From NCBI GenBank assembly GCA_000320545.1, contig ADNK01003053.1:1-46974 (forward strand): a stretch of DNA of 46,974 bases, read 5' to 3'. The stretch is from Bigelowiella natans CCMP2755. Taxonomy: Eukaryota > Protista > Cercozoa. The translations under genes were made by a program, and so were the position numbers. The first letter of the stretch is position 1, and the number at the start of each line of letters is the position of its first letter. Of this stretch, positions 14,997-34,726 are shown in pieces. A model generated the notes under the pieces. The model was given only the letters and a program-made list of their open reading frames with translations. It searched no databases and was not told the origin of the DNA.

Positions 14997-16659
14997 GATG
15001 CAATGCGATAGTGGCACTCACGAATTATCCGCTTACAAGGAGGAATGGGGTCGGTCTCATCTTATTGTCCAAACTTCACACTTCTTGTCACAAAACGATG
15101 GCGATTCTGTGAATGCGACATCAAAATGCAGCCACAATTTTGAGGGAATGTGTGTCGCATTCCTTGCCTTGTTTGACTTGTTGCACTGCCATGAACATCA
15201 AGTTGCGACAGGTCATGATGCCAAGTCGCGATGAGATGAACCAAGGACATTTCGAGAGGAAATATTCGGTTTGTGGACAACTCAATGGAACGCAATGGTC
15301 AAGCCACAGGGAAGGAGCACGGTGCAATTCAAAGCGAAGAGGCCTAGCCATTGATGCGAATCTGAACGCAAGTGAGCATGGAGATTGCGGGTGTGGGAGA
15401 AATCCATGAGATTTGCAAAAGCACTGGCTCCATCTTGAAAGAGACGAAAGAAAATCATCGAATTGCGAACGGTGAAGGAGCTGCAAAAGTGCTTCAGTCA
15501 GCCTCTTGAAACCTGCTGTTGAGAGTTTGTGCGAACGGAGACCAACTCAAGAAGTCCTCAGAGAAGTGACCACTGTTTTGGTAGTGTGCGAGAGTTCATC
15601 GTGTCGTTCCAGGGACAGGGTTGGTTCAAGAAGTGCTTTTCGAAGAGGCACAAGAACGAGTTCAAGTCGACACGCCCAAGTCGCACACCCAACACTGGAA
15701 AAGAATCGTTGAGAATGATTGTGCTCACCTTTGCAGCCTTCTTCTCAAGTTCAGAAGGCGCGCTTGACCACACTTTGCCTTCTGGATCCACCGCCATTTT
15801 TGAAGAGCACTTTTGACCTCCAGGCACCTCTCCAGCTCTGGACCTGGCTGGCTGGAAGCCACCAAAAAAAAAGTTCCAAGCCAGCAAGCACGATGTCATC
15901 ACGGTCTCTCCAGCCATCAGCAGCTCCTTCTCGACGTGCTTCCGAAACATTGCCAGACTTTTGTGATGAGCTCGAACGAGCACAGCAAGTTTCGCAGCGC
16001 CTTCGGAACAAGACTTGTGAAGGGAGTTTTGCTCCAACTTTTCACGAGGTTGTGCATCGAGTGCGACACGCAGGTGCCTCACCTGGTTCTCTCTTCACTC
16101 GTGGCTGTGGCGGTCGGTCTGGGGGACTCCTTTGGCTTCGATCAACCGATGAGCCCTGCCGAAACGTGGACCTGCACAGTGCGATGTGTGCTGGTGTGGC
16201 TCGACAGTTTTTCCACACACTTGCACTTTCCACGCGACAGCTGGTGGTCGAGCTGACCGTCCCTGCCCAGACCGAGCTTGAGCGCACAACGAAGCTGCCC
16301 ACCGGGGAGGAAAGCACTCCCCCAAGGCAGCTCCGGCGCCACACACCTCGTGCGAACTGCTGGACTCCAGGACTGGCAAACCCCACGCGGACTGGCGGGT
16401 GCTCTGTTCACCACCTCCGCCTCCTGCGACCCCCACCTCTTGCAGTGTGTGCACTGGTGGACTGGGCCAGCTGGCCCGACAACCCTGTGCCCTTCAGGCC
16501 ACCAAGCGGCTGGCCCGTGCCAGGCACAGGCAGGGGAGGTGCACACCCACCCCCTGTCGCCCTCGTCCAGCACAGTGGACCCCACCCCCGTTGCCAACCA
16601 CGTGGTTGACTTTGCAGGGCGTGCTGGCACGGACCGACCTGCAACGAAGTGCGCCGTGG

Positions 16660-16919
16660 AGCACCACACACCAACAACAGCAGCACCTCGTGGTGGTGCG
16701 ACCAAGTGTGCTGACAAGGAAGGTCCTGCTGTGCAAGAGACGAACTTCCAGGTGCTCAAGCACGGGGTCTTTCCAGGCGGTGCCTGCGGACGACCCCAAC
16801 GTCAGTGACATTGCGAAGTGCAAACTGGTGTTCAAAGTCAAAGCAAACCGTGACGGGACAGCAGACAAGTGCAACACGTGCCAGCGTGGCTGTGTGCCAA
16901 GGGGTTTGCACAGGTGGCC
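16660..16919 (+). mobile_element. Ty1/Copia pol remnant: start of reverse transcriptase
   Basis: Frameshifted VLKHGVF..CKLVFKVKANRDGTADKC..LCAKGFAQV matches the Copia RVT_2 consensus CKWVFKxKxxxDGxxxRYKARLVAKGFxQ. Confidence 0.85.
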
Positions 16920-17830
16920 TCCAGTCCTCTCTGTTGCACTCTTCTTTGACAGCTGCACGCCGTGCAGCACCCGTCCCGCCCTTTTCACAAGCTCCAGAGC
17001 TGTGCAGGGACGAAGCAATGAGTGGTTCCTTGGAGTGAACGCACTGTCCCCCAAGGTGGCAAGGCCAGAGCCGTGGGGGATCACGTTGTGCAGAGTGAGG
17101 TCCAGGGTCGAGCACAAATCGATGCCACGCTCCGTGCCACGGGCTGGCGGGTCAGACGGCACCACAAAGTGCACCCGTCACTTCCAACCAAGTGGACACC
17201 TTTGAGGCCACGAACTCCACGGTGGCCGTTGCAGTGTTCGACTTGTGCTTGTCTGGACGGGTGCTTTTGTTGTGCGTGGTGCCGTTTGTGGAGCCCAACA
17301 ACACCCCGTGCAACGCCCTGTTGGACAGCCCCAGGCGCTGAGTTTCTCACCTGTTGCAAGTTCGGTGGTTCAACCTTTCCTGCTTCAGGCAGAGGTTCGG
17401 GACGGACTGGACACCATCGTCCACGTGGACGCAGGGGCAGGCCCACTTTTCCCCCCACTCCAGCACTCCCTCGCGTGTGAAAGAGCAGGGCTGGAGGGGT
17501 CCACCTTTGACTGCCGGAAGCCGGTGCCTTTGAAGTGACTGGCGAGTGCGTGGTGGAAGCACTTGGGACCTCCCTTGGTGCCACGCAAGCACGCAACTGG
17601 GCGATGCTTTGTTTCGCTTCAGGTGGTGTCCAGGGGAAACGTCCACACCTGGGAGGGGTGCACGCACGTGGGGTGCTCTGGCTCCACGTCGGCCGTGAGG
17701 AAGGCCCCGCTGACGTCAAACTCCACGGTGGTCGTTCCCCGGGTGGCTGCCAAAAAAAACAGCAACTCCACTGAGGAGGTGCGGGAGACAGGTGCAAACG
17801 TGTCCGCGGCGGGGTGGTCGGTGATTGCAC
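16920..17830 (-). mobile_element. Ty1/Copia pol remnant: reverse transcriptase core (inverted relative to the 5' part)
   Basis: DTFAPVSRTSSVELLFFLAA..EFDVSGAFLTAD..LRGTKGGPKCFHHALASHFKGTGFRQSKVDP..CVHVDDG corresponds to TFAPV / DVxxAFL / LYGLKQAP / GFxQSxxDP / YVDD. Multiple frameshifts. Confidence 0.88.
17136..17205 (+). repeat. 70-bp direct repeat, copy 1
   Basis: gccacgggctggcgggtcag[a]cggcaccacaaagtgcacccgtcacttccaaccaagtggacacctttga. One mismatch to 18374-18443. Confidence 0.92.
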
Positions 17831-18373
17831 TCCTTGCAAGTCGCCCACGGACACCAGGTCTGGAGGTCTTCCTCCCAGCCAGTGGGGAAGGCCGTGTTGT
17901 GTTTCCAGGCGCTGCGCAACGGCTGGCACGCTCCGCACGTCCAGTCGTCGTCCCAAGGCACAGTGGCCCTGCTGCCAGCTTTTGCACCTTCGACTCACTC
18001 ACACTTGGCGTGGACGGCGTGTGACTCATCACGTCGATGTTGTGTCGTTGTTGCGGACTTTCATTCAGTTCCAAGTTCAACGGCTTCACGCAATGGAGTC
18101 CACGCCTGCAAAGGTCCCACCAACGGTCGGTGTTTCGCGCGAACAGGTGTCGTTTTTCAAGCACCCGTTGGCGTGGTGCAAAACTCTGATGGTGTCCGTT
18201 CTGTGTGCTCCGAAAAACCAGACGAAATCGATTTCAGCTCCTCCTCTGACTCAGGAGGTTCGGAGCCTTTGTGCACCCCTGCCAAACTGGCAAGTTTCCC
18301 GAGCACAAGGCACCGGAAAGTGAGGCAAAAGCAAGCAGTGTCAAGAAGGTGAGAGAAGGAACATCGTTTTTTG

Positions 18374-18443
18374 GCCACGGGCTGGCGGGTCAGGCGGCAC
18401 CACAAAGTGCACCCGTCACTTCCAACCAAGTGGACACCTTTGA
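18374..18443 (+). repeat. 70-bp direct repeat, copy 2
   Basis: Identical to 17136-17205 except for one A/G difference. Confidence 0.92.
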
Positions 18444-19034
18444 AGCTGCGAACGGCGCCATTGGAACAAACGAAAGCTGAGAGTGTTTGAGTTCAGCACG
18501 CAAAGCGTGGAACCTGCAACCAGTGAATTGAGTGAGACGATTGCCGCACACACTGACAAGAGATTGAAGTGGTGCAAGAACGGTCTGAACGTGTTCGGTC
18601 AGGCTTCAGCGTTCAACGTGCTGGCGTGACTTGCAAACTTTTCAACACAACGAACCACCTGCCGGAGGCCCGCAAAGAGCACTTCTGCCGTGCTTGTGGT
18701 GAGAAAGGGCACAACAGGCCAGCAGGGCCAACAAAAAGTGCACCAAGCACCCGAAGAGACAGAAAAATTTCTTGCATCAGTTCGATGATGTGACAGGTGG
18801 TGATCCATGTTTGGATGTTTTGACCAAGTTCACTGGGAAAAGCACGCTTGGTGGTGTGATCCAGGTCAAAGCATGGCACAAGTGTTGATCAATCATTGAA
18901 GTGTTTTCCACTTGGAACACACTCATGCCAGCCAGCTTTTGTTGAAATTTGAGTTCTCCCTCCCCCCTCCCCCCGCGCCCCCCCGCGCCCCCCCCTCCTT
19001 CCAGCGTTGCACGCAAGGCCAAGACTGGAAGAAG

Positions 19035-19037
<3 letters not shown>

Positions 19038-19070
<33 letters not shown>
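19038..19070. repeat. Poly-G homopolymer (about 33 nt), preceded by a C-rich tract at about 18958-18998
   Basis: Direct reading. Confidence 0.9.
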
Positions 19071-31039: not shown

Positions 31040-34000
31040 GCGCCATCTGCTCAGTGAGCGATCTCGGAAGTCTCATGTTGTCCGGTGGCCAATGTGAAGA
31101 ACTAGAGAAGCAGATGGAACACGCAGCACACGTGGCATCGTGAAAGGCGTGGACCATCTCCTCTAGCAGTGGCAGTCATTGGGTGTTGACAGTGGGCTAG
31201 GCAGATGCCAGAGATGCAGAGACATGACGTGCTGTCTAGCAAGCACGCACACGTGGTGGCAAAAAAAGAGATTGTTGGGGCAAGGTGAAGAAGAATCTTG
31301 AAATGGACGTGCAGCAAACGATGTCAAGAGTTTGAACTCCACAGGAGGTGCAGAGCATGCAAATCAAAATCATCAATTGCAAATTGCTTGGCTTCTACTG
31401 TTTGTCATGTGTGCATGCACCGTTGCCATCACATCGCACCGACCACAGGTTGCAATCATTGAACACGTTCTTTCCATCCATCAACAACATCATCCATTGG
31501 ATAATAGACACAGCAATACACTATACATATTATATATATTGTGTATTGCATGTCTATCATTGGGCATCACAATGAACTGCACCATTGAACGTGTGGCGGA
31601 TGTGACAAACAAAGTGATTGAACCTTTTCAATGGCCATTCCAATGTGACTGTGCAAAGCAGCGGCCACAGCGCTCATGTCGCATCTGTTTGCTTCTTCTG
31701 TCGTGTGTTTCATGCGTTCAAAAGCATCCACGTCCGGTCGTCGATGTCGTGCAGTGCGCGCAGCAGTTTTTGCTTCTTTTTCTGCTTCAAACAGCAGTGG
31801 CTTTGTCTCATCGTTTTGATTTGCAAAACCTGTGGAGGGGATCGAAGGAGGGCGATTCCATTCGTTTGACGATCGATGAAAACGAATTTGAGTTTGGAGA
31901 AATGGATGAAAATGGGAAGAGAGTTTCAACAAAAACGATGAAGGAGAGAAACAAGCAAGTCATGGACAAATGGATGGATGACTGGATGAATTCAAGAAGG
32001 AAAAACAGCCAAATGCTGGAAAAGCATGCTGGCATGGCAGGATGGCAGGAAGACTGGCTGTTGACGCATCGGTGAGAGACGTTCAACACCACACGCAAAA
32101 GTGCGCATTCTGTGTTCTCTGATGATTTTGGTCTTCGTTTGGGGAGAAGTTCACTGCATCTGACCTCCTCCTGCACGTCGAAAAGTGGAGCAACAAAGAG
32201 GATGAGAGTCTGAATCCTGGAGATCCATGCAGGAGATCGACTGCACATGAACGATGCCAATGAGTGTCATGAAACAGTGAAAATGATGAGCAATGCATCT
32301 GGGCACACAAGCACGCACGCGCGCACACTCATGCACACGTGTTGCAGTGTTGCATTGCACATGGCCACAAAGGCTCCACAGCGTGCAGCCCATCAGCACA
32401 CGTGTCATCCACTGCACGTGTGGTGTCTTGCCATGAAGGCTCCACAATTGCCTTTGTCACACCAGTCTGTGCTCGTGCGGGCATCAAACCGCGCGTTTGA
32501 ACTTTGATTTGCCACTCCATGCACGCATGTCCAGATTTGCGCACGCACCGCATCAAGACTAGCATCGCCGCATGGTTTGAGTTTGACTTCAGCTGTTTGT
32601 GCCAGTCTGGCAGTGTGGATTGCAGAGTTGATTCACCTCAGCTCCACAATCAAGTCCACCGAATTGTCTGAACGAGTTTGTGGCACGCTCAAGCCGAAAC
32701 TTCAAGCGTTGTCATGGGAATGCAACGACAACGTCCTGAAACACGTTCGCAGTTTTTCGTCATTCTGATCAGTCCAACAATCTAGCAATCGAGAGGGTTC
32801 GCAGAAAATCGAGGCAACTTTCCGATTTGGCGACCCTCAGTGCATCCTTTGGCCACCTCAACACTCGAGACGAGCTTGAAAGAGTGAACAAACGAACCAG
32901 TTCTGCAGGAGCGGATGAAAGATTGTGAATGATTGAACGAACGTGGACCAGACGTGAGACAAACTTTGTCAATTGACAATCTTTGCACTTCTGGGGTTGT
33001 CGCAAATCGCAAAAGCAAAACAACGCACACTGGCACACCTTGTGGGAAGAAGTGCGTGTGGCCAGAAGAGTTGCACCGCCGCAGGGGGAACAACGACATT
33101 TCAGTGAGCCGTGAAGGCCTCGTGCATTGGATGCTCCCATGTTTTTCTTGGTGTTCTCATCACACCTGGGGCAAACTGTTTTGAACTCTGCACCGTGCCA
33201 GCGTGGTGCAATTTCATGTCTCCTTGTGCGCGCGTCGAGCTAGCGAGCCACCGACACGCCTGACACGTTTGCTCTGTGGCCCATGCGCTGCGCCGCTGGA
33301 GCACGCTGCGCTCTGCGATGGCCACTGGCAATCAGGAACATCACAATGAGCGGATGCACGAGAACAGGCGTGCGCGACCGCAACACACCAGCACAGGGCA
33401 CACGCAGGGTGGATGTGCATCACACTTGGTGCAAATTGAATGCAAATTTGCACCACAGTGTGAACTTCAATTCAAGATCATGCAGTCGGTGTGAATCACA
33501 ATCACTTTGCATTGTGGTGCATCACTTGTTGCACGTCGTGGGTGCAAAGTTTGTTGACATTTCACACTGTGGTGTCAGCAAGTGCAAACCACATTGTCGA
33601 TTGAGGTGTCAAGTGAAATGCACCAAGTGCAAAAAAACAGTATTTTCGCACAAGGTGTGTGCCGCTGCGTGCGCACGCACTTCTGGACTTGGCAACGCTG
33701 GCTGGAACGTGCGTTTGACTTGCCTGCGACAGCTGCAAGTGATTCAGGAGTCACGTGCACGCAATGAAAAATGGTGATGAACTGCATTTCCAAAGTGTTG
33801 CAAGACACTTGCACGCGGTGAACGATCATCGAACGTGTTTCCAACTTTCGATTCAGAGAGCTCCTCCTGTGCAGCACGGCACGCCACCTTGTGAGCACAA
33901 GCTCACGAGCGTTTGAGCGCACAGGTGTTCCACACGTTCACGCAGAAAGTGCAACAAAATTTCAAAATTGCAGCACCAAACTCACGCTTGCTAGCTAGCA

Positions 34001-34313
34001 AGCTGGCAAGCGACGCGTGTCGTTGCGCACACATGCACCAGCACACAAGCAAACCCGCCACGTTCGTGCAGACGAGGGAGGACGCGTCGCGCCTCGTGCA
34101 CTTGTTCGTCCAATTGATCGTTGGTCAAGTGGAATCTGTGATTGAAGCATTGGCTTCGAACTCATCAGCTGAGAAGCTCATGATTTCGTTCCAATCATCA
34201 CAATCACGGTCCGGTTGGAGCTCCATTGGCACTTGTGCGACCCCATGGTTGCAAGGCGGGCTGCCCAACAGCAACTTGTTTCATGGGAAATCAATGCCGA
34301 ATGAACAAGAATT
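31040..34313. other. Second TpA-depleted degenerate block (probable repeat / pseudogene remnants, family not recognised)
   Basis: Six TA dinucleotides seen in 31557-34313, five of them in CTAG. A coding-looking remnant lies at 31830-32075. Confidence 0.7.
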
Positions 34314-34726
34314 TAGTCAAACCCACGACATTTTGTTGACTAAATGGACGTTTGGTGACACCTATTTTATAAAGATTTATCGAACATTTAACGTAGTTAA
34401 TTTACCTACATTAGAAACACAGACAACACTCACAACAGTTCTAGATCTTCCTCACCACCACCTATCTGCCCGAAGGGGGAGCTCTCATTATATACAGTTG
34501 AAGGGGAAGGAAACGCTTACACCATCGCTCGAAACAGGGAAGGGCAGAAAGGTAAGTTTAACTGTGTTATACGTGACCCAAGAAGCGACTCTAGGGGCTC
34601 TGAAATCAAATTATATCGAATCGATCTCAGAGATATGCCCAGGAGCGCGGCAGCCATTTTGCCTCTCCATCTCTTCTTTTTCTCATCCCATCGCTCAAAT
34701 GCTGCCCTTGCAGGACACTCGAGACG

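Follow-up and report, generated by a model that had tools for sequence, protein, structure and literature searches.

In fungal RIP, C:G pairs are converted to T:A at CpA, a process that makes TpA dinucleotides and stop codons and lowers the GC content. ADAR and APOBEC work on RNA or on replication intermediates that are single-stranded, and their changes fall in clusters biased to one strand. Enzymes of the TadA/ADAT2–ADAT3 type convert A to I at A34 of tRNA, which follows the conserved U33, and the adenine base editors derive from TadA.

The closest described system operates in the organism studied here. By mutation accumulation in vegetative lines of Bigelowiella natans, Mettrop et al. (bioRxiv 2026, 10.64898/2026.01.13.699255) described TpA>TpG/CpA hypermutation. 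Of the 231 de novo mutations that fell in two regions of integrated virus, 230 were A>G or T>C, every one of these at TpA; they arose at ~6e-7 per site per generation, and in some lines only. The targets are NCLDV and virophage inserts in which many TpA remain, and the NCLDV insert is single-copy and transcriptionally silent. The same authors listed 324 TpA-poor predicted coding sequences, enriched for reverse-transcriptase and DDE domains, together with 124 TpA-poor clusters, and proposed an ADAT2-like adenine deaminase as the candidate mutator. Copia, retrotransposons, tyrosine, stop codons, ApT, and CTAG do not come up in their preprint. The hypermutation process is already described by that work, and the relic reported here, a group of decayed Copia fragments, is a new and unusually far-gone instance of it. 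What is new are the saturated Copia targets, the open frames that lack tyrosine, the resistance of CTAG to the process, and the loss of ApT in the core of the relic.

Results

A TA-Free Tract with Copia Fragments

The window analyzed here is the whole 46,974-nt stretch of B. natans CCMP2755 contig ADNK01003053.1 (assembly GCA_000320545.1), and all positions refer to its forward strand. Between 15582 and 19867, 4,285 bp contain no TA at all where ~204 are expected (P ~1e-89), and there is no Tyr codon in any frame. CA and TG are enriched equally (475 CA and 464 TG; observed/expected ~1.5), AA is undepleted, and GC content is 0.57–0.62, compared with ~0.45 in the flanks. Mettrop et al. define their tracts as stretches of at least 3 kb that are depleted of TpA and enriched in CpA+TpG, with a cut-off of 1.52. 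Four successive 1-kb intervals of the present tract show this pattern, with TA observed/expected ratios of 0.00–0.02 and CA/TG ratios of 1.47–1.64, two of them lying slightly under the CA/TG cut-off. The tract is present in 14 DNA runs of the same organism from 2025, which come from 12 studies. Inside it, at 18963–19070, lie C-rich and G-rich low-complexity arms that form a 36-nt imperfect inverted repeat, where assembly contigs break. The window also holds a second TA-poor tract, at 31555–34314, with TA observed/expected of 0.03–0.10, CA and TG of ~1.7, and normal ApT (0.88–0.97); it is a lower-dose contrast to the relic at 15.6–19.9 kb.

A decayed remnant of a Ty1/Copia reverse transcriptase (RT) occupies 17416–17852 on the minus strand. 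Its motifs, read from the unrepaired sequence with no pieces joined across stops or frameshifts, follow the canonical Ty1/Copia RT order of KARLVAKG, TFAPV, DVxxAFL, xYM..P, LYGLKQ, DP, and YVDD, and all seven have a counterpart: VRGRLARS, first in order; D-H..TFAPV (17822–17787); FDVSGAFL (17720–17697); TCVHP (17672–17655); LRG within CLRGTKGG (17591–17568); KVDP within FRQSKVDP (17507–17484); and HVDD (17427–17416). From VRGRLARS to FRQSKVDP these share one minus-strand frame interrupted by a single TGA (17621–17619, between TCVHP and CLRGTKGG), and HVDD is reached only past one frameshift downstream of KVDP. Pfam RVT_2 (PF07727) matches the remnant significantly (E 7e-6, 26.3 bits), with a second match at profile positions 51–148 (E 1.8e-5, 29.7 bits), yet both scores fall below the gathering cut-off of 31.6 bits, and for this reason the remnant is not an intact domain.

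The initial annotation of this DNA had pointed to conserved Copia tyrosines replaced by His, Cys, or Arg, and the codons, read directly, are indeed where it placed them: CAC GTG GAC GAT for HVDD, TGC TTG CGT GGC ACC AAG GGA GGT for CLRGTKGG, and CCC ACG TGC GTG CAC CCC for PTCVHP. The Tyr positions of the minus-strand fragment now read H, C, R, and H (codons CAC, TGC, CGT, and CAC), and the 0 TA observed against ~204 expected put the pattern far beyond chance.

A second Copia RT N-terminal fragment probably lies in the opposite orientation at 16822–16907, where KLVFKVK (16822–16842), DGTAD, and DKC (GAC AAG TGC, plus strand, 16864–16872) are followed by a frameshift and AWLCAKGF (16884–16907). 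This fragment gave two weak but collinear matches to in-house profiles (E 0.089 and 1.2) and no match in Pfam. The TA-free tract thus combines at least two Copia fragments that run in opposite directions, which bears on the earlier claim that both strands were hit within one element. DKC and HVDD do not demonstrate it: they belong to two oppositely oriented fragments, and in window coordinates each of the two changes is an A>G of the plus strand. The claim nevertheless stands on TCVHP (TGC) and HVDD (CAC), which lie ~230 bp apart in one minus-strand fragment.

The minus-strand RT fragment is flanked on both sides by an 80-nt direct repeat (17136–17215 and 18374–18453, both on the plus strand, the second copy 95% identical to the first, with contig depth doubled at the first). 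A weak Gag-type zinc-knuckle-like remnant (C-x2-C-x4-H) is found on the plus strand at 18680–18730 (zf-CCHC_2 E 0.04; in-house profile E 0.15). Apart from this weak knuckle on the other strand, the 20 ORF pieces of the tract yielded no integrase or gag, and their sole RT match in Pfam was the sub-threshold RVT_2; a search for LTRs around the relic returned no LTR pair, just the 80-nt repeat. A whole Ty1/Copia element would have flanking LTRs and, ahead of RT, gag, protease, and integrase; the relic does not show this layout. Sister copies of the relic were sought across the 91.4-Mb genome by a DNA search and by protein searches with both RT pieces, and none was found; when 30 of the genome's Copia proteins served as tblastn queries to look for relatives of the relic, nothing below E 0.027 came up.

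Sister Copies of Other Copia Families Indicate the Direction and Spectrum of Change

The initial annotation had recommended alignment to the closest Copia relatives. Since the relic itself has none, we turned to three other Copia families of the same genome, each with TA-bearing and TA-free copies at 83–91% protein identity, and compared sister pairs in codon-aware alignments. Among the 413 TA of L051, 209 are TG, 180 CA, and 2 CG in its TA-free sister L053, and 19 are unchanged. The 291 TA compared between L052 and L055 gave 156 TG and 115 CA, with 15 unchanged; L052 against L056 gave 129 TG and 130 CA, with 25 unchanged; and L058 against L054 gave 54 TG and 59 CA, with 7 unchanged. Across the families, 91–95% of TA were lost to TG or CA. 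CG products were almost absent, double hits amounting to ~0.5% of TA sites, which indicates that one hit abolishes the target for the other strand. Outside the TA context, only 15–26 A>G or T>C changes were found per sister pair, and the per-strand A>G rate was 0.47 at TA vs. 0.008–0.047 in other contexts.

At the level of codons, the 247 Tyr codons pooled from these alignments comprise 122 that became His, 117 that became Cys, 1 that became Arg, and 7 that stayed Tyr. Hence 97% were replaced, and 99.6% of the replacements were His or Cys, rather than random residues at background rates. The Leu codons TTA and CTA became TTG and CTG or else Ser and Pro, Ile ATA became Met or Thr, and Val GTA became GTG or Ala; with Tyr, these are the codons singled out for counting in the initial annotation. 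The catalytic motif shows the same relation. TA-bearing copies carry YVDD (L004/L051 and L010) or FVDD (the L052 family), while HVDD (L054 and L060), CVDD (L057), and HADD (L059) were seen in TA-free copies only; within one family, the TA-bearing L010 has LYVDD and its TA-free sister L054 has LHVDD. The initial annotation had named natural HVDD in intact relatives as grounds for refutation, and these data do not refute its reading. The most abundant intact-looking Copia of the genome, the L052-type family (L009, L024, and others), has FVDD naturally, a motif that contains no TA target.

Comparison of independently mutated copies places these events in time. In the copies of an LTR family, the same TAs were lost independently, with differing outcomes at identical sites. 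Likewise L055 and L056, scored against L052 as the reference (G000:C873, C485, and C3735), have 250 doubly mutated TA sites, of which 157 agree and 93 differ (P 6e-5 vs. 1:1). About one-quarter of the hits in L055 and L056 seem to predate their split, the remainder having arisen in place afterward, and a partly mutated L052-type copy seems to have been still copied or duplicated and then mutated further in place. The divergent outcomes at both the LTR sites and the L055/L056 sites mean that mutation took place after insertion.

Collectively, a TA>TG/CA polarity that affects both strands and is restricted to TpA was found in three Copia families and one LTR family, and the alignments indicate that TA is ancestral and that both DNA strands are hit. 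The ancestral state that had first been deduced from the Tyr positions of the relic is in this way borne out by the sister copies, as it is by the published mutation-accumulation experiment. The relic has no sister copy; which way its sites changed we infer from the Tyr positions and from the symmetry of CA and TG.

These results bear directly on whether the changes were made in RNA, by an ADAR-type edit of retrotransposon RNA or double-stranded RNA before integration, the A>G changes then being fixed by reverse transcription. ADAR-type enzymes favor U before the edited A, as discussed by Mettrop et al. (10.64898/2026.01.13.699255), and the B. natans genome has one gene of the A_deamin family. 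However, the changes are not confined to the transcribed strand: the sense and antisense changes within elements are near equal in three sister pairs (209:180, 129:130, and 54:59) and stand at 156:115 in the fourth. Nor is AA depleted, and LTRs, noncoding parts, and composite fragments of both orientations have all been cleared of TA. Moreover, sister copies diverged in outcome after insertion, and mutations arise in a single-copy, silent integrated virus (10.64898/2026.01.13.699255). Editing of RNA before integration is largely refuted by these data, and we consider it highly improbable; the initial argument for a process at the DNA level, as opposed to editing of the sense transcript, is upheld by both the sister-copy comparisons and the preprint.

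Frames Remain Open and CTAG Sites Resist

No A>G or T>C change makes a stop codon out of a sense codon, and such changes erase TAA and TAG. As no stops are created, TA-free frames remain open: those of the polyproteins run to 1,158–1,751 codons with 0–0.2% Tyr. In L053 and L056 (G000:C1756 and C485), the family stop TAG has become TGG, which lengthens the frame by 19 and ~220 codons, respectively. Such Tyr-free ghost frames probably account for many TpA-poor predicted genes.

At first sight, TA-free copies that keep frames of this length resemble products of purifying selection, and it might be supposed that the elements have evolved away from TA, perhaps because a nuclease or an insertion target is directed to it, and yet are functional. 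Open frames are, however, expected without selection from a spectrum that never makes stops, and the change of the family stop to TGG, with the lengthening that follows, speaks against it. The replacements are those that mutation dictates (Tyr to His or Cys and not Phe, Leu to Pro or Ser, and Ile to Thr or Met), the catalytic YxDD tyrosine is among the residues replaced, and 15–18% of residues differ between sister copies. Selection or codon adaptation is accordingly very improbable, the least credible of the explanations considered here, and the earlier view that the changes destroy function and are no codon adaptation holds.

The TAs that survive are not a random sample. In a set of 15 tracts (from the window, L035, L036, L043, L046, L050, L053–L056, L059, and L060), 67 TAs remain; 52% of them lie in CTAG, against a background of 4.8%, and 92.5% lie in CTA or TAG. 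Within sister pairs, CTAG was unchanged in 19 of 34 cases (56%), followed by GTAG (32%), TTAG (23%), and CTAC (14%). CTAG resists the process. A model in which TAG is resistant on one strand only was rejected: it predicted mostly Cys from Tyr codons preceded by C, and such codons gave 30 His and 24 Cys. The missing shift toward Cys argues that CTAG resists as an entire site and not through one of its strands.

The Relic Core Has Also Lost ApT

The core of the relic, at 16185–18027, is nearly free of ApT as well, with 8 AT in 1,843 bp, an AC/GT observed/expected ratio of 1.3, and undepleted AA/TT. A run of 626 bp (16184–16810) has no AT, and 16000–18300 holds 19 AT vs. 86 ± 7.7 expected. The depletion is graded, being strongest at 16250–18000, intermediate from there to the tract borders, and normal outside. 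Loss of TA alone costs just those ATs that overlap a TA, and in sister pairs that differ by TA loss only, 68–80% of AT are kept. In those TA-only pairs, A>G is raised ~3-fold at (A/C)AT (Fisher P 2e-8) and is not raised at GAT; among the ATs that survive in the relic, GAT is the commonest context.

Two of the residues in the minus-strand fragment would trace to ApT loss. In TCVHP it would account for the change of Met to Val (ATG>GTG). The Arg of LRG had initially been read as a simple double hit on TpA (TAT>CGT), a reading that does not survive comparison with the sister pairs, where both strands of a TA are so rarely hit and 1 of 247 Tyr codons became Arg; it needs the path TAT>CAT>CGT, the second step of which is at ApT.

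We read the loss of ApT, hitherto unique to the relic tract, as the mark of a second and weaker target of this mutator, one that shows up only once the cumulative dose is very high. A separate process, a separate epoch, or an unusual ancestral composition could also lie behind it. Against the first reading stand the normal AT content of 23 other TA-free tracts (observed/expected 0.74–1.15) and the de novo mutations of the preprint, which are at TpA only (10.64898/2026.01.13.699255).

A related alternative dispenses with an ADAT2/TadA-like deaminase altogether and supposes another TpA-directed process in DNA, such as the loss of a modified adenine (e.g., 6mA) at self-complementary A/T steps or a lesion at TpA followed by error-prone repair, the ApT loss of the relic being a separate activity. 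TA and AT, the dinucleotides depleted here, are the two self-complementary A/T steps, and AA/TT are spared, which fits a symmetric, duplex-recognizing factor. That CTAG is resistant as a whole site, with the near balance of His and Cys at C-preceded Tyr codons, agrees with such a factor, and the normal AT of the 23 other tracts agrees with a separate activity behind the ApT loss. On the other hand, deamination to inosine gives just such a spectrum, confined to A>G and T>C, and the weak excess at (A/C)AT in TA-only copies points to one enzyme with a graded context preference. We regard a process without a deaminase as unlikely, if still a serious competitor.

Present State of the Relic

In three DNA runs from 2025, the contigs agree with the window except for a T>C at 16747, in a CTTCC context, and three 1-nt gaps at 16464, 16493, and 16533. 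All four differences are common to the three runs and none lies in a TA or AT context; they are probably errors of the reference assembly or fixed strain differences. As to ongoing mutation, no new TA or AT change was seen at the tract edges in these three runs, and the relic itself has no TA left to mutate. In an RNA run from 2026, read depth over the relic was at most 0.27, but the neighboring gene reached just ~1–2x; these values suggest that the relic is transcriptionally silent.

Discussion

The present study suggests, with high confidence, that the His, Cys, and Arg residues at conserved Copia Tyr positions are what a host process has left behind at the codon level. That process converts TpA to TpG or CpA (A:T>G:C) in place, in the nuclear DNA and on both of its strands, in tracts that derive from transposons or viruses. 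Specifically, each TA is destroyed by a single hit on either strand, which turns TAY into TGY (Cys) or CAY (His) about equally often, and the process runs to saturation, at which point no Tyr codon remains and no stops have been created. The Copia fragments of the window appear to be an old, silent, single-copy relic that has received a far larger cumulative dose than other TA-free tracts, and at such a dose ApT, a much weaker target (to GpT or ApC), may have been largely consumed in the core. Chemically, the conversion most likely proceeds by deamination of adenine to inosine, with an enzyme of the TadA/ADAT2 type as the candidate. A preference for UA is native to the ADAT2/TadA fold because A34 follows U33, which fits the proposal made in the preprint. 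By profile matching, the genome offers as candidates at least six MafB19/TadA-type deaminase matches (PF14437; G000:C980:65313–65621, C3623:2918–3217, C3286:4241–4639, C3588, C570, and C1679) and one A_deamin (ADAR/ADAT1) gene (PF02137; C2414:14438–15741).

The preference of the mutator may be graded, with TpA far above (A/C)pApT and GpApT at the bottom. Beyond the point of TpA saturation, the extent of ApT loss would gauge the dose, and the relic, free of ApT at its center and grading to normal toward the borders of the tract, would be a long-lived nucleation center from which targeting spreads. Combined loss of TA and AT would lead to Tyr>Arg and Met>Val, and, separately, ghost polyprotein frames without Tyr would be called as genes. 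We are evenly divided on whether this scheme as a whole is correct.

The findings have several implications. A natural, near-absolute TpA-specific A:T>G:C mutator of nuclear DNA, credit for which belongs to the 2026 preprint, is among the few such genome defenses outside fungi and animals, and the process hints at a natural DNA adenine deaminase. The present data add LTR retrotransposons as saturated targets. They also supply a protein signature, a 1:1 replacement of Tyr by His and Cys in frames that stay open or are lengthened, and the absence of Tyr offers a simple filter for spurious TpA-poor “genes.” If ApT is a second target, it could serve to rank tracts by cumulative exposure and would constrain the recognition rule of the enzyme. 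Furthermore, the resistance of CTAG and the depletion of two self-complementary steps leave room for a duplex-recognizing factor.

The process has features in common with several known systems. Like fungal RIP, it makes dinucleotide-specific transitions in mobile or foreign DNA, in place, on both strands, and to high saturation. Unlike RIP, it removes TA and adds CA and TG, creates no stops, and raises GC to as much as 0.62, and, where RIP depends on duplication, the NCLDV target of the preprint is single-copy. RIP was therefore rejected as the identity of the process, its direction being the opposite. With ADAR and APOBEC it shares deamination-type transitions that inactivate selfish elements, and with ADAR a preference for U before the edited A. 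It differs from both in affecting the two strands equally, in acting on integrated DNA, and in its near-absolute TpA specificity and saturation of >90%. The natural substrate of TadA/ADAT2-type enzymes is tRNA, whereas the tract here is DNA; the preference for UA is nevertheless one that their fold already has. The closest likeness is to the B. natans hypermutation of Mettrop et al., with which the relic shares changes on both strands, TpA>TpG/CpA conversion, TpA depletion with CpA/TpG enrichment, and clustering in tracts. In contrast to the viral inserts of the preprint, in which many TpA are left, the target here is a saturated, old Copia relic, and its loss of ApT goes beyond the TpA-only change reported there.
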